Below, one piece after another: positions 1,430 through 63,308 of a stretch of 64,000 nt of DNA. Numbering within the stretch: the first letter of the stretch is position 1; the number at the start of each line of letters is the position of its first letter. A program made the translations under genes and the position numbers. Under the pieces are notes generated by a model. The model saw only the letters and a list, made by a program, of their open reading frames with translations. It did not search any database and was not told where the DNA came from. The stretch is from Malacoraja senta (Eukaryota), in NCBI GenBank assembly GCA_038087875.1, contig CM075978.1:169632001-169696000 (forward strand), written 5' to 3'.

Positions 1430-1832
1430 TAGTTTAGTTTAGTTTAGAGATACAGTGCAGAAATAGACCCTTCAGCCCACCAAGACCGTGCTGACCAGTG
1501 TTCCCCATATCAAGCATGAGCCTACACACTAGGAACAATTTACACCAAAGTTAAATTAACCTACACATCTGTACTTCTTTGGAGTGTGGGAGGAAACTGG
1601 AGCACCCGGGGGAAACCTGGAGCACCCGGGGGAAACCCAAGTGGTCACAGGAAACCTGAAATCTGAAGAAGGGTTTTGACCCTAAACGTCACGCATTCCT
1701 TCTCTCCCGAGATGCTGCCTATCCAGCTTTGTGTCTATCTTTGGTCACAGGAAAAACATACAAACAGCACCCATAGTGAGGATCGAACCCGGGTCTCTGG
1801 AGCTGTAAGGCAGCAACTCTACCGCCGTGCCA
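1430..1832 (-). mobile_element. HE1/V-SINE copy interrupted by an 87-bp hammerhead-motif insertion (1655-1741)
   Basis: (TTTAG)n tail, V-SINE core, and a 13-bp TSD TGGTCACAGGAAA at 1642-1654 and 1742-1754 around the insert. Confidence 0.8.
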
Positions 1833-2074
1833 ATCCCTGTCTGGAGAATAAAGGGAACACATTTACACATACATACATCAAATAACTAGACCCATACAGA
1901 CACAGATACACACGTGCTCATGCAGCAGACACACTCTGCAAGCCGCACACATTTTTTCCTTTAATCCCCCCCAGACCATAGCCTGCTTTCACACTGGGAG
2001 CAATATAACACAGGCACCTGTCACTTCAACTTGTGTTTCTCTTAACATGCAAACCCATGCACTGTTCTCTCCTC

Positions 2075-2500
2075 TGAGCTATAGGGAGAGGTCGAGCAGG
2101 CTAGGACTATATTCCTTGGAGGGCAGGAGGATGAGGGGTGATCTTATAGATGTGTACAAAATCATGAGAGGAATAGATCGCATAGATGCACAGTCTTTTC
2201 CCCAGACGAGGAGAAATTGAGAACCAGAGGACATAGGTTTAAGTTGCAGTGGGAAAGATTTAATAGGAATCTGAGAGTAACTTTTTCACACAATGGGTGG
2301 TGGGTGTATGGAATGAGCCGCCAGAGGAGGTAGTTGAGGCAGAGACTATTGCACTATTTAAGAAACAATTAGACAGGTACATGGATAGGACAGGTTTAGA
2401 TGGATATGGGCCAAACATGTAGGACTAGTGTAGATGGGGCATGTTGGTCGGTGTGGGCAAGTTAGGCCAAAGGGCCTGTTTGTACGCTGTATGATACCAT
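2075..2500 (+). mobile_element. CR1/HER1-like LINE 3' fragment
   Basis: Decayed CR1 ORF2 C-terminus (RMRGDLIxVYKIMRGID-like) followed by the 3' UTR. Confidence 0.8.
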
Positions 2501-3914
2501 TACTCTCCTCCCCCTTTATTCCATTATTGGTTCTGAAACAATTTCAGCAGCTTAAAGCTTAAAAAAGCCTAAGCTTAAAAAAAAACAACTGCGGGCAGAT
2601 TTCAATTAAATTAACTGGCAACGTTTAAAATAAAAGCTCAAATCTTGCCCGTCGGAAACATTTCTTAACACAATTTAACCCTTTAACGCCACCAAGTGCA
2701 TCAACACAAACAATTTCCTGTCTAATTTCCTTCCTCCTAACCCTGATAAGGAAACAAGGTTCCCTCAGGGCCAACAATAATTCCTTGGTAGCTTATCCGG
2801 ACCAGAGGGGTTGCAAATGAATCTTCGGCATGGTTTAATACAGGACAGTGCATTGATTTGGGATCTGAAATGATCACTCCATTAGTTAACAAGGGCGCAG
2901 TTTAAAGAAAATAAACACGGGGGGGGGGGGGGGGGGGGGAGAGAAAGAAATGCTGCAGGAGAATTGATAAAGCATAGTGACTGATATACAATTAAAGCAA
3001 ATGAGTCATTAATATTAACAGGGGTTTAAACTTGGTAATTTATGTTTATATAAATGAGCATGCGGCAGCCCATCACATTTTACAATTAAAAGTATAATTA
3101 CGAAGACAACAGTTTAAATACCACTTTAGCACTGGGCTTGGTTTTCTTTCTTATCCTGGTGTTCTAGCATGTGCCTTGTGTTTTATCGGTAATTTAAGAT
3201 AAGTACGTATATATTTTGTTCTTATATACAGAGTCATTATGTATACAGTGTAATACTTCACTTAACAGGGTCAGTATAGCAATTGCACATATATATATAA
3301 GGTACATAAGTTAGCAGTTAAGTAAATGTACATGTAGCAGGATACATACAAAACATATCACATTCTAGATGTCTGTAAGCAGATGCGATATATATTGACA
3401 ATGAATGGATGCAAGTACACTGGATATGGATACATGTCTGAATATAAACAAGTACAGCGTTTATCAACAGTAAATATATAAAAAGCTAAAAATATTGCAA
3501 TTTGTGGAAAATAAATCCACATGAACTACAAGCAAGTCCAATTTGGAGATACAGAATGCATAAGATGGTATATATGAAAGATGTTGCCTGTCAGTATGGA
3601 TAGTTGGTAAATGTATAGGGGACACGTTGTCTGCAAGAACACACTAGTGGTAAATATATAGGATGTTCCTAAATATAATCGTAGACACACAATCAACGGT
3701 TGGGTGTCCCCTGCGTGAATGTGCAGACCGAATGTCAATGTATAAGATGCCTCAGTGTACAAGTACAGACTGACAGTCAATATATAGTGATGGTCAATGT
3801 ATGAGTGCTCGCTATCTACAAGTGCACTGTGGCAATCAATGTACTCCGTGATGCTCCGTGTCAATGTAAAGATGCTAACGGTTCAGGGCACACACTGTAA
3901 GCGCACCAGAGAGA

Positions 3915-3970
3915 CACATACAGACACACACACACACACACACACACACACCAGACACACACACACACAC
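3915..3970. repeat. (CA)n microsatellite in VAT1L intron 1
   Basis: Read directly from the sequence. Confidence 0.9.
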
Positions 3971-4017
3971 AGGACGGGGCGCAGCGACTGCGGGTTAGAC
4001 TGAACCGGCTACTTAAC

Positions 4018-4225
4018 CAGGCCTTGACTCGAATCTTCAGCTCTCCCTCCAGTGGTTCGGGCATCGCCTTCCTGGCCACCCTGAGCTTGTTCAGCCCCCG
4101 AAGCCGGAGAGGAGGACGGCTCGGATCTCTTTGGTGTCTCCCAGCCCGCTGCCCCGTTCTTTGGCCGCATCTTTCTCAATCATGTGGTCCGTCTCCTCGC
4201 TCTTGTCCAACCCTTCGCTAGCCAT
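4018..4225 (-). CDS. VAT1L: Synaptic vesicle membrane protein VAT-1 homolog-like, coding exon 1 (one-base deletion in the G-run at 4095-4099 as assembled)
   Basis: ATG at 4225 reads MASEGLDKSEETDHMIEKDAAKERGSGLGDTKEIRAVLLSGFGG; after a one-base shift it reads LNKLRVARKAMPEPLEGELKIRVKA and ends TG|GTTAAG (donor 4017-4016). This matches the vertebrate VAT1L N-terminus as I recall it. VAT1L is adjacent to NUDT7 in human. Confidence 0.92.
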
Positions 4226-4229
4226 GAGC

Positions 4230-6086: not shown

Positions 6087-7123
6087 GGATTGAAAGGATT
6101 TAGTGAGTACTACTGAGCCAATGCTCCTGCCCCTGAATATGATTCATCAACACATGCATCATATTAATGACGAAGATGAGAGAGACAGATTTAGCTTCAC
6201 TGCTTGTTGTAATCAGATACTAGTTATCTGAGTACTCACACAGTTTACTGGGAAAGGTGCTAATGCAACGGTGAAGCCAGAGCCTTTCGGAATTGGGGAG
6301 GAGAAACTGAGGAACTACAAATTCCCTTTAATACGATTTGACAGGATTACAGTATAATTTGACTGGATAGCACACAAACAAAGCTTTTCACTGTGTATCT
6401 CGGTTCATGTACAGACCAATACCCAATATGCTTTGAAATGGATTTCAGGGATAAATATAAAAAATGACAAATTTAGGAGTGTATGTTTTGTTGAGTTGAA
6501 TCTATATTATGTTTAAATCAGATGATTTAAGTTGTAATGCTTCTCATTTTATTTCCCTGCATTGGGTTTGCATGAGATTTTAATTATTCAGTAGTCTCTT
6601 CCCACCAGCAAATCCATGTTGTCATGTCACACCAACAGTGTTCAATATAAAATATGATATAATGTGCAGTAGGGCAGCAAAATGGTACAATAATGTAATT
6701 ATTCAACTAAAGATGCAGGGGTAACAGTGTGCGTGCTTCATGGAAAGGCTAATCTTGTTGACTGCACCTCTACTGAATGCATCCGTACCAAACTGCAACA
6801 GTACAGTGCAGATACTTATAGCTGTCTCGCTCTCTCTGTGAGCGAGAATGTCAAGTCATAGAGTCATACAGATTGGAAACAGCATCTTCAGCCCAACATC
6901 CCAAGAAGCCCCATCTAAGCCAGTCCTATTTGCCTACGTTTGGCCCATATCGTTCCAAATCTTTCCTATCCCGAAGGCAAGGGAATCCTACGCTGCAAGT
7001 TTCTGTGCTAGCTGGCCAGCTGTTTTTTCACTGTATCATACTCTGGTACATCTCCCTACAAGTAATGACTTCACTTTCTGAAATCTGCTCCATAATATTC
7101 TTCAAAGTCTATTTGATGGAAAG

Positions 7124-7216
7124 ACACAAAATGCTGGAGTAACTCAGGGGGTCAGGCAGCATCTCTGGACAAAAGGAAAAGGTGCCGTTTCATGTTGACA
7201 CCCTTCTTCAGACCTA
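7124..7216 (-). mobile_element. Short Penelope-derived unit with a degenerate hammerhead motif
   Basis: TSD TCTATTTGATGGAAAG / TCTGTTTGATAGAAAG (14 of 16 match); minus-strand CTGAAGAAGGG...GAAACGG. Confidence 0.7.
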
Positions 7217-7529
7217 TCTGTTTGATAGAAAGTCCATTAATAAGGACAGTTCATTTATATCTATAATGAATACATGGCTAGGCTGTGATATGGCAGAACA
7301 ATAGTTATTGTGTAGAAACAAGGAAATGCAAATGCTGGCTTTCAAAAAAAGGACACAAAATGCTGGAGTAACTCAATGGGTCAGGCAACATCTCTGGAGA
7401 ACATGGATTGGTGATGTTTCAGGTTGGGACCCTTTTTCAGACTGGATAGCAATTATTATACTGGACCAGTCATCCAGAAGATGAGAATATTAATCATAAT
7501 TCCCTTTATGAATGTTTGAGAACTTAAAA

Positions 7530-8891: not shown

Positions 8892-8899
8892 TACTTTAA

Positions 8900-10523: not shown

Positions 10524-10872
10524 AGAGACACAAAATGCTGAAGTAACTCTGTGGTTGGGCAACATCTCTGCAGAACATAGGTAAGTAACATTTACAGTCA
10601 GGAAGATAGACACAAAGTACTGGAGTAGCTCAGCGGGTCAGGCAGCATCTTTGGAGAAAACAGATGGGTGATGTTTCGAGTCAGGACCTTTCTTCAGACT
10701 GCTGGACCACAAACCGCAACAAAACGCTGGAAGAATTTAAGTTTGAAGAAGGATCCCGACCTGAAACGTCACCCATCCATTTTCTCCAGAGATGCTGCCT
10801 GACCTGCTGAGATACTCCAGCACTTTGTGTCTGGCTTCGGTGTAACTAATTTCTGCAATTCCTTTCTACACG
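10524..10872. mobile_element. Penelope-derived units arranged as an inverted pair, each arm with a degenerate hammerhead motif
   Basis: Arm 10605-10700 is the approximate reverse complement of arm 10742-10835. Confidence 0.75.
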
Positions 10873-11962
10873 TTTAGGGTCAGGCCACTTATTCAGGCTT
10901 AACTTCTTCCAACGTGTTGTTATTTGCTGCAGAAATGGTGCATTTGCCCCAATGAGTCTGCTTTGCTGTTGAGTAAATATCATTAATAATCTTATGCCTC
11001 AACATCTACATTGCTACCAATTTGAGCATAGAACATAAAATAGTACAGTGCTGGAACAGGCCTTTTAGCCCACAAAGTCTGTGCTGTCCATAATGCCAAT
11101 CTAAACTAATCCCAAATGGACACAAAGTGCTGGAGTAACACAGCAGATTAGGCAGCATCTCCGGAGAACATGGATAAATATTTCAGATCAAGACTCTTCT
11201 TCAGACTGTCATCTCAACCCAAAAAAGGCACCTATCCATGTTCTCCAGAGATGCTGCATGACCTACTGAGTTTGTTTGTGTATTAACCAGCAATAGCAGT
11301 TCTTTTTTTTCCACATCAACTAATTACATATACCTCTATATGGTCAATATCCCTCCTTGCCCCTTCATATGGCTGTGTAAATCCGTCTTAAGCATTGCTA
11401 TGATATTTACTTCCACAACTTCCCCTGACAGTGCATTTCCGGCACCTACCACATCACTGGGGCATTGGAGGAAACTGAAGCACTCAGAGGAGACCCACGT
11501 GGTCACAGGGAGAAAGTGCAAACTACACATCAACAACACTAGCTGTCAGTGCTGGCATATACAGTATCTACATGTCTCTGCATTGGCCTTTAAGCCAGAA
11601 ATGTATGACATAGATAAATAAGTGCTGGCAATGGAACCATAGCTGATAAGCTGCAAACAAAAAGGTAGGCAACAGTTGTATAGAAATAGATTAAAGTGAA
11701 GTGTATAGATAAGCATACATATCACTAGAGATAAAGGCAGGAAGGTGAATGGGCAGATGGATAGATAAATGGAAGATTGGAAGTACATTATAATCATCGT
11801 TCATATCTGTGATGTAGAATCTCTGTTTTAAATGCTCCTCTGTGAAACAAGAATCACAAGTGTTTTTCTTTCAATGTTTTTTCAACATCAATAGTTCAAT
11901 GGCTCAATGGTGTTTTAACGTCACACACGCAAACGCACAGTGAAATTCTTTTCTTACATACA

Positions 11963-12255: not shown

Positions 12256-14249
12256 GATAAGTAAAGTATTGCCATACCTAAGCACAACCTCCGATTAGCA
12301 AAGTGAAAAGAAATAGTCCACTGAGACCGCATGCAAGAGGCAGCAGGTTTTGCTGCCACTTTCAACATCCAGACTGCGCAGCTCTTACAAGCGGTGCCCA
12401 ATCTAGGCAAGCCCCAGGCTGTTGCAGGGCCTCCAGCCATCACCTTATAAAGAAATATAAATATAAATTAATAAATAATATAAAGAAAATCAAGTTAAAT
12501 AAAAGTATGTTTCACACTTTCTCCAAAGATTCATTCCCCGATTAAATTTCAGTCATTTGGCTGAATGTTTTCTTTATCGTAGTGCAGGAAGTTGTGCAGT
12601 TTAGAAGAGTTCCAATCTCTGTCATTCGCCGTAAGGAGCTGACAGTAACTGATTTCAATTTGTGTTTGACACTCCTGTCATTCACCAGTGATCATCCCGT
12701 ACACTAGCACTATCCTGCATACTAGGGCCAATTTACACATTTTTCACCAAAGCCAATTAACCTACAAACCTACACGTCTTTGGAGAAAGCATCCGGATAA
12801 ACCCCACGTGGTCACAGGGAGAATGTCCAAACTCTGTACAGACAGCACCCATAGTCAGGATCGAACCCAGATGTCTGGCGCTGTTAGACAGCAACTCTAC
12901 CACTGCACGACTGTGCTGTCCTTGCTCCACAGTGCCGCACTTATGCACTCCTTACACACTCAGGAATGTTTGGCCAAATTCTGCTCTATCTCCATTTACA
13001 AATTTGCAGATCGCACTGGCGTAGTGGGCTGGATCTCAAAAAATGACGAGATTAGAGGTCTGGAAGGAGATTGACAGTTTGGTAATACGAGATTAAGGCA
13101 ACAACCTCTCCCTTAATGTAGACACAAGGAACTGCAGGTGCTGGTTTGCAAAAAAAAAGATACAAAGTGCTGGAACATGGATGGGTGTCGTTTTGGGTCA
13201 GGAACCTGGCAAACACTGTTCAGACTGGCAAACCCTAACAAAAGGAGCTAGTCACCAGCAGGGTGGCATACACGCTCCTGTCTGTGTCAGTGGTGCTGAG
13301 GCGGAGATGGTTGAGAATGTCACCAGCAATTTGTCTGATTCCAACATCATTGATGCTACTGTCAGGAAACCACATTAATGCCTCTACAAGTTCAAAAGGT
13401 GAAGGAAACTCCATTGACTCTTGCCAATTTCCCACAGACACACTGTAGAAAGCATCCTATCCAAATGTCCCAATACATGGTATGGCATCTACTCTGGTCA
13501 GGATTACAAGAAAGTGCAGAGAGTTGTGCATGTCTCAGGCTGCTTTGGTTTCCTCCCACATTCCAATGAAGTACAGGTTTGTAAGTTAATTGGGTTCGGT
13601 AAAAATAAATGTAAATTGTCCCTAGTGTGTAGGATGGTGCCTAGTGTACAGGGTGATCGCTGGTTGGTGTGGACTCGGTTGAGAATGTAACTTTAGTTTA
13701 GATTAGAAACAAAGAACTGTAGATGCTGGTTTATACCAAAGATAGACACAAAGTGCTGGATTAACTCAATGGGTCTGACAGCATCTATGGAGAAAAAGGA
13801 TGGGTGACTTTTCAGGTTCTTCAGACTTTTTTCAGTCAGAAGAAGGGTCCTGACCCAAAACATCACCCATCCATTTTCTCCAGAGATGCTGCCTGACCCG
13901 CTCAGTTACTCCAGCATTGTGTTTATCTTCAGTTTAGTTTAGTTTATTACTGTAATGTGTACTGAGGTACAGTGAAAACCTTTTTGTTGCATGCTATCCA
14001 GTCAATGAGAAGACGAAACATGATTACAATCAAACCATCCACATTGTGCAGATAAAGGATAATGGGTACAACATTTAGTGCAAGATGAAGTCCAATGAAG
14101 TCCGATTAAGGTCTGCAATGAGATAGATGGGACGTCAGGACCGTTCTCTAGTTGGTGAGATGACAGTTCAGTTGCCTGATAACAGCTGGGAAACTGTCCT
14201 CAGTCCTTACCTCAATCTCACCCCCCCCCCCCCCCCCACCATGGCTCTG

Positions 14250-15875: not shown

Positions 15876-18103
15876 CCCCGGGGGAAAAGATTTCTGACTC
15901 TCTAAGCAATCAATGCTTGTCATCATTTTATATATTTCTGTCAGGTCTCCCTTCAACCTTTGGCATTCCAGAGAAAACAATGCAAGTTTGTCCAACCTCT
16001 CCTTAACAAGAGAGAGTCAAGAGTGTTTTAGTGTCATATGTCCTGAAATGTAACAATGAAATTCTTACTTGCAGCAGCATAACAGATATATAAACACAGT
16101 ACTCTGTAACACCCATAATAAGCAACAACAAGCAATCAGTATATCTCATATTGTCATATTGATTTAAACTGAAGGGGGTAAGATTTAATAGGAACCTGAG
16201 TGGTAATTTTTTCACACAAAGGGTGGTGGGTGTATGGAATGAGACGCCGGAGGAGGTAGTTGAGACACTTATTATCGTAACATATAAGAAACATTTAGAC
16301 AGGTTCATGGATAGTTTAGTTTAATTTAGTTTAGAGATACAGCACGGAACCAGGCCCTTCAGCCCACCGGGTCCGCGCCGACCAGCGATCCCTGCACACT
16401 AACTCAATCTCTACACACTACGGACAATTTTTACATTTACCATGCCAAATAACCTACAAAACTGTACAAACCGAAGATCTCAGAGATAACCCACGCAGGT
16501 CACGGGGAAAACGTACAAACTCCATACAGACAGCACCCGTAGTCGGGATCGAACCCAGGTCTCTGGTGCTGCATTCGCTGTAAGGCAGCAGCTCTACCGC
16601 TGTGCCACTGTGACCACCCTAAGGATAGGACAGGTTTAGAGGGATATTGGCCTAATACAGGCAGGTGGAAGTAGTGTAGATGGGGCATGTTGGCTGGTGG
16701 GGCAAGTTGGGCTGAAGGGGCTGTTTCCATGCTGCAGGGCACTATGACTATGTTAAAAAAACAGCCAAATAAATTGCAAATAGACATTAAGCTGATACCA
16801 TCTGACCCTAGTAAAGATAGTGGTGATTACGAACCCCTGCTGGCATTGATCTTCTCAAGGCAAGACCCACTTGTGTCAGAGGTGTTGTCAATCGGACCTC
16901 ATCCCGATAATTGTTACAGTTCTTACTCACCACCTGCCCACTCCCATTTTATATTTGTCCGCAGAAGGATTTATTGACTAAATGCTCATATAACAGAACA
17001 TCCACGACACATCGGAACAATAAATCAGGTTATTTTTCTCAAGCTTTGGATAACCTTAAAGTGGGCTGCGCCAGTTTGTTATGGCTATAATTGGATTTTA
17101 GAATTGAAATGTCAGCTTATCGCTGGCACCTTATCACCATTTTTCTGAAGTAATCCTGCTACATTAAAAGACCAAAAGTGCTGGGGTAACTCCGTGGGTC
17201 ATGCAGCATGTTTTTCCCCTGTCTTCCCTATGCACGCCCATTTCTCCCTTCCTGTATAGTCTTTCCGCTGAGTGGATAACACGCAACAAAAAGCTTTTCA
17301 CTGCACCTCATGACAATAAACTCAACCAAACGAAACTACACCAGCGATCACCCCCTACACTAATCTACACACACTGGGACAATTGTACAACCTACAGAAG
17401 CCAATTAATTCACTTACAAACCAGCACATTTTTGGGATGTGGGTGGAAACTGTAGCACCCAGAGAAAACCCACACGTTCACAGGGAGAATGTACACACTC
17501 TGTGCAGACAGCACCCGTAGCCAGGATCAGACTCGGGTCTCTGGCGCTGTAAGGCAGCAACTACACCTCTGCGCCACCGTGCTGCCCGACTGTGATGTTG
17601 TGTTGCCTCTGTGGTTCAACAGCACATCAAAACTCATTGGCCAATTCTTTAGGGGGCAGCTACCAATAGAACCAATCCCCTCTACCAGTTTGAGACATTG
17701 GACCAAGGCGCCAGTCTGGTGTTTGTCAAATATAGGGAAGTTTAATATAAATTCAATCTCCTGTACAGAGTTTGTTTCCTCTGCTGTCTATTTGAACACA
17801 CTGAACATTTTTATACACACTTGGTTCCCTGTAGTTATTGGATTTTTAATTAGCTGCCATGATTCCCAAAGGAAATATGAGTTGAAAGAAAGGCGTATTT
17901 TATTTATGTTTAACTCGCGAGTATTAAAGTGGAACTTCCAATTATCATGAAAGTCCTAGGTATTGTCAATGGGGAATATAATGTTGTTTATTGGCTTTAG
18001 AAAACGTTTGTTGCCCGCACTCGGAGTCTGTGTCGGTTCTGATCGCCTCATTACAGGAAGAATGTGGAGGCTTTAGGGAGGGAGCAAAAGAGGTTTACCA
18101 GGA

Positions 18104-18578
18104 TGTAGAAACAAGGAACTGCAGATGCTATTTACCAAGGCTATTTTACACAAAGTGCTGGTGTAACTCAGCCGAACAGGCAGCACCTGTGGAGAACATT
18201 TTGAGAGAAGACCCTTCTTCAGACTGATTCACCTCAGATTATGTCAGGGCGAGATGAAAGCTGGAAGAGGGAAGAGGCAGAACAAATCATGGTGGGTATT
18301 AGCTGGACTCGGGTGAGGAGAGTTTTTGATAGGCAGATAGCTGGAACAAAGGCCGGAAATAAATCCAGAAGGTGTAAGACAGGATCGAAGAGTTGCAAAT
18401 TGTGAAGCCAGAGGATAGTTGCAGGGTGGGGGCTGGTGGGGGGGGGGGAGTAGATGGGTCCAGGAGGGGCACAGAGGAAGAATGAAGGGGGAGATAGGGT
18501 GGGAAGGGGAGTGGGCAAGAAAAGGGAGGGTTCTGAGGCGGTTAGTTAGAGGTTACCTGAAATTGGAGAATTCAATGC
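18104..18578 (-). mobile_element. Penelope-like element 3' remnant
   Basis: Minus strand reads IEFSNFR* at 18552-18576, then a pyrimidine-rich spacer and a truncated hammerhead unit. Confidence 0.75.
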
Positions 18579-22728: not shown

Positions 22729-22734
22729 TAGTCG

Positions 22735-42764: not shown

Positions 42765-43347
42765 ATAGAAACATAGAAAATAGGTGCAGGAGGAGGCCAT
42801 TCGGCCACTTCGAGCCAACACCGTCATTCATTGTGATCATAGCTGATCGTCCCCTATCAATAACCCGTGCCTGCCTTCGCCCCGTATCCCTTGACTCCAC
42901 TAGCCCCTAGAGCTCTATCTAACTCTCTCTTAAATCCATCCAGTGACTTGGCCTCCACTGCCCTCTGTGGCAGGGAATTCCATAAATTCACAACTCTCTG
43001 GGTGAAAACGTTTTTTCTCACCTCAGTCTTAAATTACCTCCCCTTTATTCTAAGACTGTGGCCCCTGGTTCTGGACTCGCGCAACATTGGGAACATTATT
43101 CCTGCATCTAGCTGGTCCAGTACATTTATAATTTTATATGTTTCCATAAGATCCCCCCTCATCTTTCTAAACTCCAGTGATTACAAGCCTAGTCTTTTCA
43201 ATCTTTCCTCACATGACAGTCCCACCATCCCAGGGATCAATCTCGTGAACCTATGCTGCACTGCCTCAATCACAAGGATGTCCTTCCTCAAATTAGGAGA
43301 CCAAAACTGTACACAATACTCCAGATGTGGTCTCATCAGAGCCCTAT
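42765..43347 (-). mobile_element. CR1 LINE 3' fragment inserted in a Penelope-derived unit
   Basis: CATAGAAA tail on the plus strand; host sequence GATGCTGCCTGA...CCCGCTGAG resumes after it. Confidence 0.9.
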
Positions 43348-46994: not shown

Positions 46995-47540
46995 ATGATT
47001 CTTGGAAGAGCAAAAAAATAAACCGCTGGTGGAACTCAGCGCAACATCTATGGAGAGAAATTGACAGACAGCGTTTTGAGTCTGGTTCCTTCTTCAAGGC
47101 TGGTATAGAGGGAAGATGGATGGTGGGAACATATGAGAAGGGGTGGGGCAAGAAATTGATAGAGCCAGGTAAGGAGGTGTTGACTAGCAGATGACTCAGG
47201 TGGGGGCAAGAAGGGTAGGGAGTCGCAAAGGTTGGAGATGGTGCAGAAGGCAGCAGAAGGTGGAAGAGGAGGGGAAAGGAAATGGGAGCTGGGGAAGTGG
47301 AAGGAAAGTTGTGTGAGGGGACTTGGGGAGATCAGGTCAGTGAAAGAGGGGAGGGTTAAGTGAAATTGGAGAATTCATTGTTCATACCTTTGTGTTATAG
47401 ATTACCAAAGAGGAATATGAGGCACTTCTTCCAGTTTGCATGTGGCCTCACTCCAGCAATGGAGGAGGCCCAGACAGACAGATCCATATGAGAATGTGAA
47501 AGGGAATGGAAGTAGCTTGCGACTGGGAGCTCCAGCTGGT
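46995..47540 (-). mobile_element. Penelope-like element: endonuclease-domain C-terminus and 3' repeat
   Basis: Frameshifted minus-strand translation ELPVASYFHSLSHSHMDLSV/GLLHCWSEATCKLEE/LIFLFGNL*HKGMNNEFSNF resembles the Penelope GIY-YIG region end. A degenerate hammerhead unit follows near 47070-47100. Confidence 0.85.
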
Positions 47541-48527
47541 TCAAGCTCTTAATCAGGAATTTCTCTAGTTACATTGACAACACTCAGACTTGATGTACTG
47601 CTTTTGTTTTGAGCCATGAACTGAAAGGATAGTTTGCATTTTCAAACTATGGAACTTCTCATAGTAAGTCAATAACTTGAAGCATTAATCAGTATCTCCA
47701 TTCACAGATACTGCTTAATCCACTGAGTACTTCTAGCAATTTGGGTTTTATTTTAGCTTTCCAGGAGTCGCAGTATGTTAACTTTACTTAATGGTTTTAG
47801 TTTAGTTTTAGTCTTAGACATACAGCGTGGAAAAAGGCCCTACGACCCACCAAATCCACGCCGACCAGGAATCACCCTGTGCACTAGCACTATCCAACAC
47901 ACAAGGACAATTTACAATAACCCATTAACCTACATATAGGCAGTGGGCCGAGGAGCTTTATTCCAGTGTTTCGTGACCCAAGTCACCGAACTACATTAAA
48001 TTTTCACATATTGTGTAAAAATATTATATAAATCACCCCTGAAACTCGTCGAGAACAAGACTTGCACATTTTTTATTAAATTAAAGAAAAACCGATCAAA
48101 GCACGTTTAACATTGAGTTGTATGCCAGTTGGCCAATCACGTGCTTTGTTTCAGGCTAGCTAGGCAGGGAGCACACAACATGGCTGAGAGGACTTCACTA
48201 ATGCCTGTTTTACTGGAGATTCCGATGAAGGTTCTTTCTAGTTCTGTGGAATACATGTCGTGGAAACTTGCAGCGGGGTAATTGAATTTAGTGAGAAAAG
48301 CATTAAGAAGTCTGAAGAATGTGCAGCTAAGTGGATAGAAGTGGAAGTCTTGAAAGCAAAGTCGCTGCTGAGATGCTGCAACACCAAGTTGTGAAACCAG
48401 TCAAACTTTGTGAATCAACGAACTGAAAGGTAAGATCTAAAGTCTGAATTTATGAAAATTAATCTGTATGGACTTTAATTAATTTAATTGCACCCTTTAT
48501 GTGAAAAAATGAGATTTGGAGGCTGTA

Positions 48528-51305: not shown

Positions 51306-53945
51306 CTAATGAAAACAAAAGATATATCATGTTAAATTCTGATGGCGTTTTAAGTGGTACAATGATTTCCTGGTTGTAACTGACTGGAAGTATCACAATT
51401 CTTAATTTAAATCCCTGACACTGTGAAGAAGACAATCAACCAAATGAAAGGAGACTTTTTTTCTGGATCCATTGATAGATGTGATTTAATTCAAGAATAT
51501 TTAAAACAAGATTGGGTAGATCTGCAGTTGGAGAGATGGGACTGCTCGGAGAACTGGCAGAGACTCTACGGGCCAAATGGTCTCCTTCTGTCATAGAAAA
51601 AATGAGGGAAGAGAAATATGATAGCTGACAAAAATCCATTCCATTTTCGATATGGCATTCAGACAGAAAGTCACAGATAGTACTCACACTAGTACGAATG
51701 AGTGTGTTTAGTTTGTCAGAACACAATTTGAAGGGAGTATTTTCATGGCTCGCACATCATTACAGAGCGGGGGTGTTCAGCTAATTGGTCCAGAATGCAA
51801 ACATTTTGCTTTAAGCATTTATTATCAAATAAACTCATCGGTTAATTATATGGTAACAATTACCCTGCTGCTTTCTTGCATTTCAAATAGACAATTAGAG
51901 ATAGCACTCTGGAATGTTAGTACTCTGCAATATTATTTTGCAACTTTTCCTGTAAAAGTGTTAATATTGTATTTAATAGTTAAAGCTGCGAAGATTAAAT
52001 GTTGGGTGTGCACTTTGAAAAGCGAATCTACTAGTTTAATTTAGTTTAGTTTAGACACAGCATGGATACAGGCCCTTTGGCTCACCGAGCCCACGCTGAC
52101 CATCGATCGCTCGTTTAGACTAGTTCTGTTATCCTACTTTCTCATCCACTCCCTACACACTAGAGACAATTTACAAATACTAATTAACCTAAAAACCTGC
52201 TCGGCTTTTGGGAGATGTGGGTGGAAACCGGAGCACCCGGAAGAAACCCATGTGGTCACAGGGCGTGCAAACTCCACACAAACAGCACCCAGATCGGACT
52301 CGGGTCTCTGGCGCTGTGAGGCAGCGGCTCTACCTGCTGTACCACTGTGTCGCCCTAAATTGTTTATTGAGTTTACACTACTTAAACCATTTCCCATCGC
52401 TTGCATGCATCAACATATTTTCATTCCTTTCACAGCCATCTGTTTATTGATTTTGCTTGTACATATAAGCTATTTGCTTTAAATATTCCCAGTAGCAGCG
52501 AGATCCACATTATAAGTGCACTCTGGGTAAAGCACAAATTTGAGAATTGAGTAAAATTTATCCATGCAGCAATGAGCTATTAATCTTCTTGACTGAATAT
52601 TGCCATATCAGGGACATGGTATAATAAAATAATGCAGCAGCTGTTGTTTGTACAAAAACAGAATGCAGTGGCTGAAACAAGTGATATAAAAGATTGTTCT
52701 CAAACTAAAGGTTTGTGTCATCTGACGGGTTCCTATGGCAGGATCATCAATTTGTAAAGTTGGCTCAGTCAGATGCTGCCTGACCGATTTCCGAAGACTA
52801 GGTTATTCTCTATTGCAGAGTTCAAGAATTGTTTCTCTCTCTTTCATCTCCCTCTATTTACATCTTCTCTAGATGGATTGAATAGTGAAAGGCCTGGATT
52901 GAGTGAACGTGGAGGGGATGTTTCCACTAGTGGGAGAGTCTAGGACCAGAGGCCATACCTCAGAATAAAAGGATGAACCTTCAGAAAAGAAATTAGGAGA
53001 AATTTCTCTAGTTAGAGGGTGGTGAATCTGTGGAAGCCAAGTCACTGGATATTTTTAAGGCGGGAATTGAGATTCTTGATTAGTAAGGGAATCAGGGGTT
53101 ATGGGGAGAAGGCAGGAGAATAGAGTTGAGAGGGAAAGACAGATCAGCCATGATTGAATGGAGTAGTAGACTTGAAGGGCCGATTGGCCTAATTCTGCTC
53201 CTAGAACTTCTGATCTTATGAAGATAAGTTGCAATGAACTAGTCTTCAACTCTTTCTCTCAGCCTGAATCCACAGTATTTGTGTAATTTACTCTACAGTC
53301 GACATACTGTCATGGATATTCCCCCCAGTTCTTTAGACTGCTCCCCTCTCTGCAACTTAGCACATCATGTTTTCTGATATTTTTCTAGTTCTGATGAAAA
53401 TTCATCCATCTAAAACATTACTCTAGAGTTCACGTACAAAGTAGAACTGCTAGTGGGAATATTTAAAGGATTATAGCATATATGTATAAGCAAAGTCAAT
53501 AAACAGATGACTGTGAAAATAATGCAAAAAATGTTGATGCATGTAAGTGAAGTGACAAGGTTTAAGTGCAGCGTAAACTCAATAAATATAATGGTCTGAT
53601 GTAAGCTATTTCCTTTAGTGTGAACTAAAATTAGAGCTAGATCATTCAGAACCAAAACCAGGAACTACAATGTGTAAGAAGAAATGGCAGGTGCTGGTTT
53701 AACACCGAAGATAGACACAAAATGCTGGTGTAACTCAGCGGGACAGGCAGCATTTCTGAAGAGAAGCAATGGTTGACGTTTTGGGTCGAGACCATTTGTC
53801 AGGATCTGCAATCTTGCACAAATGGTTGCAGATATGTGGGATTTTATATCAAAAGTTGTACAAGCTTCATTGATAGAAATGCACAACATTGAGATGAAAT
53901 CATTTTTGTTTAGCAAAACAATCAATGCACTAAGAAGTAAAAGCA

Positions 53946-54074
53946 GTGTGAAAGAAGGAACTGCAGATGCTGGTTTAAACCAAAGATAGACACAAAAAGC
54001 TGGAGTAACTCAACGGGACAGGCAGCATCTCTGGAGAGAAGAATGGGTGATATTTCGGCTCAAGACCCTTCTTC
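53946..54074 (-). mobile_element. Short Penelope-derived hammerhead unit
   Basis: TSD AGAAGTAAAAGCA / AGAAGCAAAAGCA; the element boundary falls at the CTGAAG core. Confidence 0.7.
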
Positions 54075-54094
54075 AGAAGCAAAAGCAAATGGAG

Positions 54095-54322: not shown

Positions 54323-56603
54323 AGTTAAGTACACCGAACGGGCAAATGGTCTACTCCCAACAATATAGTTTTGGAGTTAATAGTTTTGTGATTCTGTCTG
54401 CATTTGTTCATATTTGTATGCCTTTACTATAATTCCTCCTTATATTTTACATCATGACTTTTCAACCATTCCTTCTGCCTCCAATACCAGTGTTTACACT
54501 TTTCAACATTACTCTTGCTCAAAAATGCCAATTAAAGGAACCTCCTTTCGCTCTATTGCCTTGAAGCATATCATTGCCGTATTACAATCTCATCTTATTT
54601 ATTTATTCTTCCATCAATTCCATTCCCCTGGAGGCTTTTTAATGCATAACTGCAATATTTGATGCCAACAAGCTAGGTACGATGATTTGTCATGGGATGT
54701 CAGCATCATCCACTTTACATAGAGTAGGAAAAGACTATGTGGCCCACCATCCCTGTATTATTCTTGTCATTAATCTCTAAAGGGTGCAGGGAAGAAATAT
54801 AAGGATGTTGCCAAGACTCGAGAGCCTGAGCTGCAGGGAGAGGTGGGGCAGGCTAGGACTTCATTCCTTGGAGTGCAGGAAGCTACGGGGTGATCTTAGT
54901 GTGTAAGATCATGAGGAGAGTATATCGGGTGAATGCAGTCTTTTCCCAAAAATAGAGGAATCAAGAATCAGAGGACATGTTCCCTGAGGGAAGTTTTAAT
55001 TAATAGGAACTTGAGAGACAATTTTTTCAATCTGAGAATAGTGAATATATGGACCGAGCTGCCAGAGGAGGTAGTTGAGGCTGGTTGAAGGATATTTTAA
55101 AAACATTTGGACAACTAATTGGACAGGAAAGGTTTGTGGAATATGGGCCAAATGGGACTAACTGAGATGGGGCATCATGGTTGCGTGGGCTGGTTGGGCT
55201 GAAGAGCCTGTTCCGTGCTGTATTATTCTATTCCATCCAATTCCTACTCTTTCTCTGTAACCCTTAAAAATAATCCCCTTCAAACGTGTGCAAATCCAAT
55301 TAGACAATTGCAACAGAATCTATCCTTTTAAGCAGTTTATTCTACATATAACATTGTTTCAATAAAGAACAATCCTTATCTGCTTACTGCCTTTTATTCT
55401 AATTTTGGCAAGCTATGACAATGTGCACTTCATCCAAGGCTGAAGACTGCAGATTCATATTATTCATATATATACATACATACAACATATCACTTATTTA
55501 ATATTACAAACATATTAAATATTTACTGATCCCTCTATTTAAGAAATCAGTGAAACTACAATGGATTGTGGATTTTTTTGATTTGTTTATAAAAACAATT
55601 CAGGCATTGATACTCACAAACCAGGAAATTATTCTATTTACATGAGTTACACTCCCATGTGTCAATCTTAATTCAAATCTTTTCCAGAAATTCAAAATAC
55701 TGCTGGCCTACACTAGAGTCATCACACTAACTGCATCCTTGGACAAAGCACACTCGTTAATCCGAACCCTAAAATTGGCAAATGATGCAAAAAGTTGGGG
55801 ACAAGTCCTCTGGTGTAATAATAGTATCTCATTTTTAATCCTGATCTCTCAGTTGTCATGAAGCTGAATTGAAGTATTGTGCTAATTCTTTTCTTACTAA
55901 TTTAGTTTGACATTACTTATGCATAATTCACTTCTGGCACCGTTAAATCAATTAAAACTGTAATGGTTTCTCTAAAGAACAAAGCTTATAAATGCCTTCA
56001 ACAGCCACAGCCATATTTCAAACCTCCAGATCAAAAATGTGTTGCTTGAATACTTGGTAAAGTATAATTTGTGTATTTTGTGACTATATAAATTGGGATG
56101 TTTAATCAATGATATTTCACATTAGTGAATAAAAATATAAATTATCCAGACATTATTCCTACTCTACTTGGAATGTTAGTATAGGAGGTTCCCCATGTTA
56201 CGTAGAGAAATCTGACTTTCTGCAAATTCTATCACATATCTTTATGGCATTTTTAAACTAGTGATAATAATATGCTTCTGGTATTTACTAATGATTGGAT
56301 ACAAAATATAGTTAATTAGTTTAATTATGGATATTCAGGTGATTATTCACTGAAATGATGATAATAGATGTATGCAGAGTAATATAATATGGAATATAGA
56401 ATTAGTGGACTCAGCGGGTCAGACAGCATCTCTAGATAAAATGGACAGGTGACATTTCGGGTGGGGACCCTTCTCAGAGACATTCATTTATTATCACGTG
56501 TACGGAGGTACAGTGAAAAATCTTTTATTGTGGCAAAATATCCTGAGGCCTTTCCCAGGAACATTTTCAACATGTTGACACAATGCCACATCATCACATG
56601 TAA

Positions 56604-57165: not shown

Positions 57166-59785
57166 TTAGGGTAAATGATCAAAACCTCAGTCCGTTTTAA
57201 GGAACAAGGTGGTGAGTTTTTTTTGCTACAATTAAATAGCTGCCAATGTTACAGCCAGCCATCTTATGCAGTAGCTAATTCAGAACTTTGATGTCAGGGC
57301 ATTTATGAGACAAGTGACTTTGAATATCATTGTCTAGCATTTGTTTTCCTTGATTATTAATTGTCTTTATCAGTCCAAGCTTGCATGTTGTACAGGGTCT
57401 GAAATGCATGCATGGGCTGCTTCATTGTCAGAGGATCCACAAACACATTACAATCTTCAGCGACATCCCACATTTGATTTTGTGATGTAGCAAGCTCATT
57501 GATGAAGCAATGTACGATGGGTACTATTCAATTTAACTGAGTAGGTTGCTAGGCTACTTCAGAAGGCAGGTTAAGAAAAAATCTTTTGTCTGAAGTCAAT
57601 TAACAAACCAGCAGTGGTGGATGTTGTCTATATGAACTATATTGACAAGATACCACATGGTAGTCTGCTCTGGAAGGTTAAATTGCATGAGGTTCAGACA
57701 AAGCTAATTGGAGACATAATTGGCTTGATACTAGAAAACAGAGGCTGAGATGATGGTTGAAGGTTGTTTTTCGAATTGGAGGACTTGTTTGCTATTTATT
57801 TAAACAATTTGGATGAGAATGCACAAGGGATGGTTAGCAAGTCTGCCGTTGACAACAAAATAGGAGGTATCCAGAAATTTGTCAAAAATTACAGCCGTAT
57901 CTTGATCAGTTGGGTAAATTGGCCGGTGAATGGCAAATGCTGTACAATTCAGGTAAGTGTCAAGTGTTTTTGCAAAGTCAAACCTGGATGAGACTTTCAT
58001 TGTGAATGTTAGGGCCCTGGGCAGTGCTGCAAAACAGAGAGACTAAGAAGTACAATTATGTAGCTCTCTAAGAGTGGCGTCACAAATAGTCAGGGCGGTG
58101 AAGGCATTTGGCACACTGACCTTCTGAGTCAGGGCATCAAATACTTGAGGAGATTTTGCAGCGATATCTCTCGTTTCCCTTTCCCTTGACTCTCAGTCTG
58201 AAGAAGTATCTCGACCTGAAATGTCACCTATCCTTTTCTGCAAAGATGCTGCCTGACCCGCTGGAGTTACTCCAGCTTTTTTGTGTCTTTGAATACAAAA
58301 ATTGGGATGTTAAATTGAAATTGTACAAGACATTGGTGAGGCCACCCTGGAGTCCTGTGCATAGTTTTGGTTACCCTGCTGGAGGGTAGGGTTTAAGGAG
58401 TGCAAAGAAGATTTTTTAGAATGTGGCTAGAGGACCTGAGTTATAAGGAGAGGTTAGGCAAACAGGTGATCGATGGTCAGTGGACACGGTGGGCCTGGGA
58501 GGTTTTCCATGCTGTTGCTTTCAACCGATCAATCAATCAAGCTGGATGTTATTCCCTGGTGTTTTGGAGATTATATGGCGACTTTATAAAGAGTTGGGCA
58601 GGCTGGACTAGGTGTCCTTTTCTGCTCATCATTTCATTTTAATTATCTCATGTTCCTCGAGTTCAAATCAAGGCAGGGAAGCCAGAAGCGGAACATTCGG
58701 GTCCACAAGTGATCAAAGCAGGGATGATGAGGCATACCAGGATGATGGTAGCAGCAGGACGCTTATGCAGAGATCAATTATCAAGGGATATAAGATTATA
58801 TTGGAGCAGAATTATGCCATCTGGCCCATTGAGTCTGCTCCACCATGGATCACATACAGGAAGATGAGATTAGTTGGCCTCATGTTTGGAACAGGCATTG
58901 TGGGCCAAAGAACATATTCTTGTGCTGTGCTATTCTAAGTTCAAAGACAAAGGTGAAATAGAATCATAGTCATACAGTATGGAAACAGACCCTTCGACCC
59001 TATTTGCCCATGACCCACCTACACTAGTCTCACCTGCCTGTGTTTGGCCCATATCCCTCTAAATCTATCCTATCCATGTACCAGTCCAAATGCTTCTTAA
59101 ATGTTGCGATAGTACCTGCCTCAACTACCTCCTCCAGTAGCTCGTTCCATATACCCACCATCCTTTGTGTTAAAAAGTTGCCTCTCGAGTTCCTATTCAA
59201 TGCAACACTATACCTGGTGTAGGTATCTGTTCCAAATCTCGCCTCAGGTTCAAGTCTAAGACCAAGCTTGCCAACATTCTCAATGTGTATTTAATATCAA
59301 CAAGGAATTGTAAGCAGATATACTGAAATATTAAAGTAAAATGCTAGAAACGTTCAGCGGGATTAGGTTAAGGGATTAATTGCCATATAGAAATTGGAGG
59401 AGAAATGTTGCTAAACCGAGGATTGTTATTCTCCAACCCAGATGGCCGTGAATATTCTGCTGTTCTGCATAATCAAGGATGAGAAGAATATCTTTTTGGA
59501 AACTTGGTTTCACGGGATATTGAGATCCGTCTAAGTAAAGTAAACTTGAGGCACAAGATTTACCATGAGATCTTTTTAAATAATGTAGCAGAATTATGGA
59601 GCTGAATAATCAACACTGACGTTTTATGTTCTTACGAGGTGCAACGTGATGTCATGCAGCGAGTTTGTTAAAGACTCCCTCTACCTCCATCCCTTCTCAT
59701 CCTTTCCCTCACCTCCCATCCGCCACCACTCACCACCCTCCCTGCCCCCCCCGACCCCTCGGCTGCCCTCACAGAGCAAATAGCG

Positions 59786-60642: not shown

Positions 60643-60645
60643 CAC

Positions 60646-60681: not shown

Positions 60682-60820
60682 TGTCGTCGCCGCCGCTGCT
60701 CGGGGTCAGTCCGGACGCTGCTGTGGCGGCGCACAGTCGACGTCACCGCACTGCGGCGCGGCCTTCGGACGTCAGAGAGCGCGGCCTGCGCCCCCCGGCG
60801 GTGACGGAGAGCGGTGCAGT
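60646..60820 (-). promoter_or_regulatory. CpG-island promoter and 5' UTR of NUDT7 with two CRE-like TGACGTC sites
   Basis: Very high CpG density; GACGTCA at 60739-60745 and 60768-60774. Confidence 0.65.
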
Positions 60821-60827
60821 GAAAGTG

Positions 60828-61017
60828 TCAGGGAGGGGGGTCAGAGAAAGGGGGAGAAGGGTTCAGGGGAAGGGGAGTCAGAGGGAGGGGGAGGAGGGGG
60901 TCAGAGAAAGGGGGAGGAGAAGGGTTCAGGGGAAGGGGGAGAAGGGTTCGGGGAAGGGGGAGTCAGAGGGAGGGGGTCAGAGGAGGGGGTTAGGGAGAGG
61001 GGGAGGAGGGGGTCAGG
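60828..61017 (+). repeat. G-rich degenerate repeat (GGGGTCAGAG/GGGTTCAGGGGAA) upstream of NUDT7
   Basis: Read directly from the sequence. Confidence 0.85.
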
Positions 61018-61224
61018 AAGTGGGATACACAGCAAAGGTTTACACAAGATAGACACAAAATGCTGGAGTAACTCAGGCAGCTAGAAGGAATGGGTGACTT
61101 TTCGGGTCGAGACACTTCTTCAGACTCCGACGATCAAAATTTACTCACACGACACTCGTCGAATTCATTAACACGGCTCCAATGAGACAGTAATAAATGA
61201 TGCAATGAATGTCAAGAGTTTGGA

Positions 61225-61446
61225 GTGTGAATGGTTCAATGGTACGCGACTGAATGATGCAGGAGTCAATTGGTACAAGAGTGAATGGTTCAAGTGTCAG
61301 CGGTTCAAGAGTCAATGGTTTTAGAGACAATGTTACAGTGGTACAAGAGACAATGGTACAAGAGACTGGTACAAGTCAATGGTTCAAGAGTCAATGGTTT
61401 TAGAGACAATGTTACAAGTCAATGGTTCAAGGGTCAATGATTCAAC
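61225..61446. repeat. Degenerate ~15-bp tandem array (GTCAATGGTTCAAGA)
   Basis: Repeated CAATGGT(T/A)CAAG units with a higher-order duplication. Confidence 0.8.
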
Positions 61447-63308
61447 ATGACAATGAAGTACCATTGAACTACTATCTCACACTTCTGACTGCTGCCATCA
61501 GGGTGGAGGTACAAAAGCATTCGGTTCAGGAACAGCTATTCACCTAGAACCCTCAGGTTCTTAAACAGTGCTGCACAACACAAACATTGCCTTGTCACTG
61601 GAATACTGCATACCAACTCATACAATTTATTTTCAGGTTGTATTTGGCACTAATATTTTGTTTGTTTTTTGCAGTCTTTCCTTCCATTATCTTGTAGGGT
61701 ATGTATAATTCATGCTTTTGTGTTACCCGAGTCGATGATGTTGCTGCAAGCAACATTTTCATTGTACTTGTGCCTCATTTTCAGTCTGAAAGGTCTCGAC
61801 CCAAAATGTCACCCATTCCTTCTCTCCAGAGGGGATGCCTGTCCCATTGAGTTACTCCCTGTCCCATTGAGTTACTCCAGCATTTTGTGCCTATCATCAT
61901 TTTCCTTGCGACAATAAATTTGACTTAACAACACCTTGCACAATCAGAATGACCGAGTCGGTCAAAGGTTTCATTAATAAATGCACTCTAATTGTAGACA
62001 CTCCCATCTGACTGGATAACACACGAGCAACCAGTGTCAAGTCACTTTTGTTCTGTTGTATGATTTTATTGCAGATGCATTTTTTGCTGTTCATTAACAT
62101 ACTTTAATAAAAAGAATACATTATTAGTTCACAATTCTATACCAACATCGAAATAGCATACATGATCAAAAATGTACTACGGAGGTACATAATGGCATTA
62201 CTTTGGTGCATTCCTAATTTGAATGCTCAGTGTGCAGTATTCAATGGAAACAGAATCACAGCTTGCGATCTCATTAAAAAGTGGGTCTGCACGTGGAAGT
62301 ATTTGAGCAGTTTAAATACATGCAGTGATATAGAACATGCTGATGAATATTACACCCTCTACAAATATTTCTAAAAAGGCAGCCAAAGTAACAAAGCAAC
62401 ATTAGCAAAGGGAATAGAATGATGTACAATTGTTTATAATAAGGAACTGGTTTATACCAAAGACACACACTAAGTGCTGGAGTAATTCAGCGAGTTAGGC
62501 ACCATCTCTGGAGAACATGGCATGGTGAAACTTTGAGGGTGCCGACCTGAAACATCACCTATCCACGTTATCCTAGGACGCTGCCTGACCCGCTGAATTA
62601 CTCCAGCATTTGGCATACAAGCATTTCCTGGGTTGGAGGGGATTTACAGTTGTGTAATGATTCATAACATTTGTTTGATACAATTGGATTCATGATGCTC
62701 CTGTCTTTTAGTTTAGTTTAGTGAAACAGGCCATTCGGCCCACTGAGTCCACACCGACCATCGATCAACCATTCACATTTGTTTTATGTTTTCCAACTTT
62801 CTCATCCACTCCCTAGACACCAGGGAGTTAATTAACCTACAAACCCACAGAACATTGGGATATGGGTGGAAACTGGAGCACCCGGAGGAAACACATGCAG
62901 TCACGGGGTGAATATGCAAACTCCACACCTACAGCACCCGAGGTCAGGATCAAACCCGGTCTCTGGCACAGTGGGGCAACAGCTCTATCAACTGCACCAC
63001 TGTGCCGCCGTGTCATCACCCTCTCAGGGATTTCCTGAAGTACTTCATGGTTCAAGTGCTGTGGATGCCCTATCACCAATGGGCAAATCCCAGCAGCCGA
63101 TTATCACACACAGCAAGATCCCACAAACAGCAATGTTTCACCTTTCATGGGGACAAACGATCAAGATCAGATATGTCCCTCATGTCTCATCCGCCCCGTC
63201 ACCATGGCAACTCCTCAGCTAGGATTCAGTATTTGTGTCTCTGGATGTGATGTGCATCCTCAAAAATATACAAATGGGGCTTAGGTTTCAGTTAAATGCG
63301 ACAGCACA

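Follow-up and report, generated by a model that had tools for sequence, protein, structure and literature searches.

What are the short repeats with a hammerhead-like motif that recur across a 64,000-nucleotide (nt) stretch of the genome of the skate Malacoraja senta, how did they get there, and could any of them still cut RNA? The stretch (assembly GCA_038087875.1, contig CM075978.1, positions 169,632,001 to 169,696,000), referred to here as the window, holds 46 of them. We conclude that they are very probably old retro-copies, most of them dead, made from the 3′ end of a cartilaginous-fish Penelope-like element (PLE). The full unit, read on one strand, consists of an open reading frame (ORF) end, ~300 nt of CT-rich untranslated region (UTR), a 33-nt hammerhead, and a tail of 67 or 105 nt. 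By its sequence features the motif is supported as a minimal hammerhead of the PLE type, and its self-cleavage is a prediction only.

Copies of the family in the window

A family profile was built from 13 good copies with nhmmer and used to search the window with an E value cutoff of <0.01. It recovered 46 copies, of which 22 lie on the plus strand and 24 on the minus strand; together they account for 4,324 bases (6.8% of the window). The original prediction had described a repeat recurring about two dozen times, and all 23 of the places it listed fall on profile copies. It had also counted the family among the most abundant repeats, and within the window the family is indeed the dominant short repeat. 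The consensus it had given was recovered unchanged from the copies: (CA)GT-CTGAAGA-A-GGGTC-YY-GACCC-GAAA-CG-TC-ACC. The exact pattern CTGANGA..GAAAC occurs 8 times in the window, compared to 1.4 expected from shuffles, and the 28-nt consensus with at most 3 mismatches also occurs 8 times, compared to 0 expected.

The hammerhead segment is present in 31 of the 46 copies. Eight hammerhead-bearing copies lie beyond the 23 listed places, with first bases at 10438 (+), 13226 (-), 13827 (-), 18226 (-), 27891 (+), 35797 (+), 53805 (-), and 62536 (+). Mean identity of the copies to the family consensus is 82% (~18% divergence). Decay at CpGs, proposed for most copies, was borne out as well: the three internal CpGs are the most mutated columns of the motif, with G12>A in 10 of 36 copies, C15.2>T in 10 of 36, and G16.2>A in 11 of 36. 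Every invariant core base is retained in 11 of the 31 hammerhead-bearing copies, and stem II, the CG palindrome, and all core bases are found together only at 24142-24172 (+). At most one or two copies in the window could, judged on these features, still cut.

Structure of the motif

In the consensus, the unit runs in the order (CA)GU, CUGAAGA, an extra A, GGGUC, a two-base loop, GACCC, GAAA, CG, UC, and ACC, followed by the tail. Both catalytic boxes (CUGAAGA and GAAA) are in type I order with a GUC cleavage site, and all core bases are present (C3, U4, G5, A6, G8, A9, G12, A13, A14, A15.1, U16.1, and C17). The extra A between A9 and G10.1, which is unpaired, was found in 30 of 32 copies. Stem II is 4 to 5 bp long and includes the G10.1-C11.1 pair. 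The motif has no helix III of its own; in its place stands the palindrome A15.1-C-G-U16.1, for which, going by its bases, the only possible partner is the same palindrome in a second copy.

The terminal repeats of PLEs (pLTRs) carry minimal hammerhead ribozymes (min-HHRs) (Cervera & De la Pena 2014, PMC4209133), for which four features not forced by the authors' search have been described: families with compensatory changes, a nucleotide that separates position 9 from 10.1, G10.1-C11.1, and a palindromic 15.2-16.2 (PMC4209133). The skate consensus has the last three. It also shares with PLE min-HHRs the type I order, the boxes, a short helix I, a location beside a PLE ORF, and an occurrence as thousands of scattered, mostly solitary copies with some close opposite-strand pairs, which is how the published copies are distributed (PMC4209133). 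Stem II differs, with 4 to 5 bp in skate and 6 to 8 bp in the Schistosoma families, and the 2-bp helix I resembles that of the D. virilis variant. PMC4209133 makes no mention of cartilaginous fishes. Lunse, Weinberg & Breaker, cited in PMC6765202, reported that min-HHRs cleave as dimers, and the published in vitro activity of such motifs is low, even as dimers (PMC4209133).

Could the resemblance be a chance property of an unrelated repeat? We consider this extremely improbable. The weak helix I, the missing helix III in the monomer, and the lack of Rfam matches (see below) speak for it, but the consensus has the expected base at 12 or more specified core positions, the motif agrees exactly with the published PLE min-HHR in where it lies, on which strand, and in its special features, and an independent PLE family, described below, has the same design.

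Several observations weigh against a working hammerhead. Helix I has only 2 bp in cis. The minimum-energy fold from ViennaRNA is a rival hairpin, formed by CUGAAGAAGGGU and the downstream ACCC..UUCU.CAGA (unit positions 4-16 with 33-52; e.g., 33761-33809 [-]), and stem II has a pair probability of only ~3%. Among window copies the rival hairpin pairs in 84.5% of cells, compared to 87.5% for stem II. Compensatory change in stem II and core boxes better conserved than their flanks, both of which the original prediction led us to look for, were not found in the window: stem II showed no compensatory change and its pairing was not above that in shuffles, while the catalytic boxes were no better conserved than a 40-nt block at unit positions 45-84. 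The Rfam hammerhead models (types I, II, and III, HH9, and HH10) gave no match at gathering score across the whole window, and none at E values of ≤10 either there or in the 101 nt around the best copy. In polyA RNA reads from a related sample, which do not sample small RNAs, read ends piled up neither at the cleavage site nor at the unit's 5′ edge, and the family was covered equally on both strands.

Some of these negatives were to be expected. The copies are dead and decay neutrally, so the absence of stem II compensation is what the window should show, and the test has no power here. The Rfam result is likewise expected, because the motif lacks helix III and has a helix I of 2 bp. The equal-strand polyA coverage fits passive read-through of dead copies and carries little information on the source elements. 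For the rival hairpin, too, window copies showed no covariation, and RNAalifold on 14 copies returned no consensus structure. A dimer with a 4-bp intermolecular helix III was modelled at -12.7 kcal/mol, compared to -21.3 kcal/mol for the minimum-energy dimer. Two skate subfamilies (A and B) could be distinguished, and the sole well-supported difference between them inside the 33-nt motif is loop II.

Stem II in metagenome relatives

We scanned metagenomes for the two boxes separated by any 13 bases, and 65 distinct sequences matched. All four stem pairs were formed in 8 of the 65, compared to ~1.3 expected, and the free extra base was A in all 8 fully paired sequences versus 44% of the remainder. 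The metagenome stems read GGGC/GCUC or GAGCU/AGCUU versus GGGU/ACCC in skate, i.e., U-A to C-G and G-C to A-U replacements; 3 of 5 stem pairs are changed on both sides between skate and the invertebrate family, with the metagenome rows chosen by pairing. This selection biases the percentage paired, and bias is absent only from the enrichment and the extra-A signal. Putative covariation of stem II is seen only against an unrelated invertebrate PLE family in metagenomes.

That family (loci L017-L091, on contigs whose names begin with Ga0126336_, Ga0126337_, and OMLO01) is an abundant eukaryotic repeat of host-associated metagenomes with the identical minimal hammerhead design. Its motif reads A-GGGC-UAAC-GCUC, then GAAACGUCACC, and it is probably an invertebrate PLE. 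Loci L036, L049, and L055 had no ORF of ≥200 amino acids (aa); only L022 gave a usable endonuclease ORF.

Link to Penelope-like ORFs

The original prediction had tied the longer copies to the C-terminus of a Penelope ORF. The link itself stood, in that two copies have an ORF end upstream of their hammerhead and on its strand, but it is thinner than proposed: the full string LQPNG.NIEF.NF. with its stop occurs only once in the window, at 29105-29152 (-), in a copy whose hammerhead is lost. In the two linked copies, IEFSNFR plus stop (ending at 18553) and GMNNEFSNFT plus stop (ending at 47356) lie 290 to 330 nt upstream of the same-strand hammerhead. The copies and remnants concerned are as follows.

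18101..18226, minus strand: long copy; hammerhead with G12>A and the cleavage site deleted
18227-18552, minus strand: CT-rich UTR of the same long copy
18553..18576, minus strand: ORF end of the same long copy, IEFSNFR plus stop, with the stop codon within CAG-GTAAC
47013..47096, minus strand: long copy with short tail; hammerhead decayed
47356..47568, minus strand: endonuclease C-terminus remnant, frameshifted (..VASYFHSLSHS..DLSV.. / ..KLEE..I.. / GMNNEFSNFT plus stop), ~260 nt upstream of the 47096 hammerhead
29105..29152, minus strand: solitary ORF end, GLQPNGTNIEFPNFK plus stop, then CT-rich UTR; no hammerhead remaining downstream
33677..33812, minus strand: copy nearest the consensus, with long tail; core intact, stem II 4/4, G16.2>A
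33677..33812, UTR, minus strand: CT-rich for >300 nt upstream, to about 34150

Only the last third of the endonuclease survives in the skate remnant. Its 57 aa at 47398-47568 align with the C-terminus of the L022 ORF (BLASTP, pairwise E value of 3e-4). That ORF contains a zinc knuckle as well as a GIY-YIG block reading VIY...YTGET (Pfam PF01541, E value of 0.016, below the cutoff), and a hammerhead of the same design lies ~100 nt past its stop. Pfam searches of the skate endonuclease pieces and of ten window ORFs gave no match, and a library-wide protein search with the 57-aa remnant returned only one spurious repetitive protein. No window copy has a reverse transcriptase-coding remnant attached, all being cut back to the last 70 codons or fewer, and a complete pLTR-ORF-pLTR unit was not found in the window.

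Ends of the inserted copies

The tail of the unit consists of the very conserved 40-nt block and two CCAGCAU boxes, and the copies end in it at one of two places. Their 3′ ends are bimodal, with 17 copies ending at profile positions 96-105 and 18 at 135-143, ~38 nt apart. Subfamilies A and B each contain the two end classes as well as long and short copies, which suggests that the two 3′ end classes and the long and short forms are alternative outcomes of the same source elements. An optional tail of 30 to 40 bp is a hallmark unique to PLEs (PMC8557442, PMC11167929) and was traced in an Anolis element to reverse transcription (RT) that starts at either of two neighbouring internal sites (Frangieh et al. 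2024, PMC11167929).

At the other end, the start of 30 of the 46 copies is no more than a few bases away from where the hammerhead begins, and ~20 of these 30 have unrelated flanking sequence immediately upstream. About seven copies extend upstream into the CT-rich stretch, and two of them reach the ORF stop. Family-wide reads and contigs behave in the same way: similarity ends exactly at the first hammerhead base, and depth drops >10-fold upstream. Cutting by the hammerhead does not explain this sharp edge, a further point against the hammerhead reading, because cleavage would leave an RNA starting at ACC, 30 nt inside the motif. Rfam scans (at gathering score and at E values of ≤10) turned up none of the other self-cleaving families (HDV-like, hatchet, pistol, twister, and the like) and no ribozyme that cuts at its own 5′ end, so the edge is not attributable to a known ribozyme of that kind. 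Since both 3′ classes share the 5′ edge, the copies are easier to reconcile with a linear RNA whose 5′ end is defined than with a circular template.

Two copies are flanked by 13-bp target duplications, and a third has a shorter one.

24142..24233, plus strand: short form (~100 nt), CpGs kept; carries the only intact hammerhead
24142-24172, plus strand: that hammerhead; stem II 4/4 (GGGUU/GGCCC, two G-U), CG palindrome, GUU cleavage site
1655..1741, plus strand: short form inside a short interspersed nuclear element (SINE); G12>T
7118..7213, minus strand: short form; U16.1>G; ~10-bp target duplication ATCAAAYAGA

The duplications of 24142..24233 are perfect (24129-24141 and 24234-24246), and since its CpGs are also kept, this copy is probably young. 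Those of 1655..1741 lie at 1642-1654 and 1742-1754; here the unit splits a SINE, which proves its target duplication. The tRNA-related SINE pieces lie at 1560-1660 and 1742-1800 (+), with another at 34700-34860 (+), and share the core ..ggaggaaac..cacgg.gagaac.tacaaact.., which we take to be of the type typical of cartilaginous-fish SINEs.

Seven head-to-head inverted pairs were found, with the hammerhead ends a few bases apart on opposite strands, along with four same-strand neighbours 180 to 270 nt apart. Mutual identity of the inverted-pair arms is mixed, at 0.60 to 0.85 versus a mean of 0.73 for random copies. Such a head-to-head arrangement has been described for PLEs (PMC4209133, PMC8557442). 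The window holds dispersed single or inverted copies only, and nowhere in it does the unit form a tandem array. DNA contigs of other runs (X5 and X1) join the unit's 3′ end (~134) directly to its 5′ edge with a 135-nt period, corresponding to 33679/33813 in the window; these head-to-tail junctions occur in 30 contigs in X5 and 2 in X1.

A separate lineage of short units

The same anatomy bears on an alternative, namely that the short 100/138-nt units are a non-autonomous SINE-like or retrozyme-like lineage with masters of its own, mobilized in trans by the PLE enzyme. Starts at the hammerhead edge with unrelated flanks, the loss of similarity and depth at the same base in reads and contigs, target duplications that bracket just the short unit, and the 135-nt junctions in X5 and X1 would all suit it, as would a 2026 preprint that derives animal retrozymes from PLE pLTRs and reports them in one chondrichthyan (Li et al., 10.64898/2026.07.22.740005). 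Nevertheless, we regard it as possible but rather unlikely. Because both subfamilies contain long and short copies and both 3′ classes, the short copies do not stand apart as a lineage among those sampled here. No tandem array is present in the window, the hammerheads of published retrozymes are canonical ones with loop contacts and not of this minimal form, and the RNA reads have neither strand bias nor defined ends.

Promoter and intron readings of the 5′ edge

A second alternative is that the motif is kept as an internal promoter or as the arm of a hairpin recognised by the PLE protein, with the hammerhead vestigial or a passenger. The 5′ edge coincides with a match to YYANWYY, and the D. 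virilis Penelope pLTR has an internal TATA-less promoter with an initiator (Inr) and a downstream promoter element (DPE) (PMC2377424); the candidate initiator and DPE matches in the skate unit are, however, short and often expected by chance. The rival hairpin, as noted, is the predicted minimum-energy fold. In an Anolis PLE, insertion in vitro was unaffected by hammerhead mutants and no transcriptome sequencing (RNA-Seq) reads ended at the cut site (PMC11167929), and PLE clades without hammerheads proliferate well (PMC8557442). On the other hand, no promoter model requires the twelve invariant positions and three family-specific extras that are present, and the unrelated invertebrate PLE family keeps the boxes while changing stem II with pairing preserved. 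On balance this alternative is unlikely.

The candidate initiator at the 5′ edge is TCAGTCT, e.g., at 33806-33814 (-) and 58191-58199 (+). A candidate DPE, CGTCA at +28 to +32, fits RGWYV in 4 of 5 positions, and the cleavage-site region could double as core promoter.

It is conceivable, if doubtful, that most copies did not arise by random 5′ truncation and are full-length copies of a short RNA that starts at the first hammerhead base. Its transcription would be driven by an internal promoter of the initiator type that overlaps the ribozyme, and RT would begin at the nearer of the entry sites lying 100 to 138 nt downstream. If so, the ribozyme sequence would serve a PLE-driven mini-retroposon both as core promoter and as 5′ leader, and such a short promoter-defined RNA would explain why hammerhead-led stubs outnumber longer copies by at least 10:1.

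In the long copies, the ORF stop lies in CAG-GTAAC (18551-18560 [-]) and the hammerhead follows a pyrimidine tract and CAG (18224-18226 [-]). A pyrimidine tract ending in CAG also precedes the hammerhead at 24290-24325 (+), 58160-58195 (+), and 33813-33900 (-). The D. virilis Penelope intron ends at hammerhead helix I (PMC4209133). The CT-rich stretch from ORF stop to hammerhead, with its donor- and acceptor-like pair ~330 nt apart, may be a retained intron that ends at helix I. No GT..AG joint from ORF stop to hammerhead was seen in the RNA reads, at a depth of only ~10 reads. Skips of 315 to 322 nt in DNA contigs were considered as intron excisions and rejected; they are copies with divergent UTRs and are not precise.

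Comparison with known hammerhead-bearing elements

Poseidon PAc of Anolis carolinensis resembles the skate family in having its hammerhead about 100 to 110 nt upstream of the RT start, two neighbouring RT starts that yield copies with or without a 30- to 40-bp tail, and no RNA-Seq ends at the cut site. It differs in that its ORF start overlaps stem II, whereas the skate motif lies ~300 nt past an ORF stop and the skate unit has no ORF start downstream of the motif; moreover, the PAc evidence is biochemical and the skate evidence comes from sequence.

In animal non-LTR retrozymes the type I hammerhead is of the canonical form and makes loop-loop contacts (Cervera & De la Pena 2020, PMC7229834). 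The original prediction had called the skate family retrozyme-like, which proved apt in part. Like retrozymes, it consists of short non-coding units with type I hammerheads that co-occur with, and probably depend on, PLEs; its solitary "monomer" copies are scattered, and related DNA contigs have the 135-nt head-to-tail junctions. The label fails where retrozymes have tandem arrays, loop I-loop II contacts, efficient cleavage, and circular RNAs, whereas the skate motif is of the minimal PLE form, with a 2-bp helix I that lacks a loop.

Schistosome SM-alpha and Sj-alpha are also short, very abundant non-coding retroposons with a hammerhead (PMC6765202). In them an RNA polymerase III (Pol III) promoter precedes a canonical hammerhead (PMC6765202), whereas the skate hammerhead stands at the extreme 5′ end of the unit and, unlike in these elements, no A and B boxes were recognised by eye in the skate unit. 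Candidate Pol III boxes were rejected by eye for their poor match and for T4 runs within the unit.

Other copies and surrounding sequence

The other copies in the window are listed here.

10438-10518 (plus) and 10520-10603 (minus): two decayed fragments, tail-to-tail
10602..10701, minus strand: short form; core intact, stem II 3/4; left arm of a head-to-head inverted pair
10740..10878, plus strand: long tail; C3>T; right arm of the inverted pair with 10602..10701
11114..11312, head-to-head pair: 11114-11208 (minus), cleavage site deleted; 11212-11312 (plus), hammerhead truncated
13111..13226, minus strand: long tail, decayed; 9-nt insertion in the motif
13700..13965, head-to-head pair: 13700-13827 (minus), stem II deleted; 13833-13965 (plus), U4>A and G12>A
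21008..21089, minus strand: short form; hammerhead mostly deleted
24326..24462, plus strand: long tail; about 35 to 60 nt of UTR upstream; G12>A
27045-27172, plus strand: core decayed; tail overlapped by 27164-27199 (minus), a hammerhead-only fragment
27739..27957, head-to-head pair: 27739-27876 (minus), core intact, stem 4/4, G16.2>A; 27891-27957 (plus), C3>T and G8>C
34884..35012, plus strand: long tail; core intact; C15.2>T
35583..35881, cluster: 35583-35680 (minus), core intact; 35686-35787 (plus), without hammerhead; 35797-35881 (plus), 5′ box lost
36046..36147, plus strand: short form; core intact, stem 3/4; palindrome lost (CC)
42585..42768, inverted pair: 42585-42720 (minus), C3>A; 42719-42768 (plus), fragment
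53664..53805, minus strand: long tail; G8>A and G12>A
53944..54077, minus strand: long tail; core intact; palindrome bases decayed to UA, still palindromic
56409..56475, minus strand: both ends truncated
58194..58290, plus strand: short form; ~30 nt of UTR upstream; core intact, stem 2/4
61037..61127, minus strand: core intact, stem 3/4
61783..61899, plus strand: internal duplication; CUGANGA box has a deletion
62442..62613, inverted pair: two 5′-truncated copies, joint at 62536
7311..7444, minus strand: long tail; G8>A

The sole run of N is at 59786-59985. The copies nearest to it, 58194-58290 and 61037-61127, are both >1 kb away, and none touches or spans the gap, so this assembly gap is without bearing on the hammerhead family. 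CT-rich sequence flanks the gap on the left, and a 20/80-nt CT-rich satellite (59986-60643) lies directly to its right; the satellite motif is CTCCACCACAC..CTCTCCCC, with a composition like that of the CCACC-rich part of the PLE UTR. An 85-nt GA-rich repeat follows the satellite (60834-61016). Elsewhere in the window, 7923-8167 is a clean 31-nt tandem repeat with 7.9 copies and 97% matches.

Proposed origin and significance

An origin of the copies from the 3′ end of a PLE can be outlined as follows. Published work on PLE hammerheads would have two motifs, on one transcript or two, dimerise via the palindrome; each would then cut after GUC, slowly and probably with cellular help, and so trim multimeric or read-through PLE transcripts. 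The remaining steps are suggested by the anatomy of the copies. The PLE enzyme would nick the target with a stagger of ~10 to 13 bp, and RT would start at either of two internal RNA sites ~38 nt apart, giving the two 3′ end classes. Copying would run back to the RNA 5′ end, mostly within 3 nt of the first hammerhead base, and head-to-head inverted pairs could arise from neighbouring insertions or twin priming. Once inserted, copies would decay neutrally to ~18% off the consensus, fastest at the three motif CpGs.

The hammerhead-bearing PLE is of a kind already well described in other animals, the skate family itself is ordinary, and nothing in it alters the known picture of hammerheads or PLEs. 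Its main use is in annotation: a single PLE-derived unit makes up about 7% of the window, and its ribozyme motif will escape generic repeat libraries as well as Rfam models. The family has an unusually sharp 5′ edge at the hammerhead. As an independent set of vertebrate data, it also repeats the two-start-site "tail" signature recently shown biochemically in the lizard element, and thousands of dated copies of the family could help to show whether the hammerhead is under selection in the source elements.

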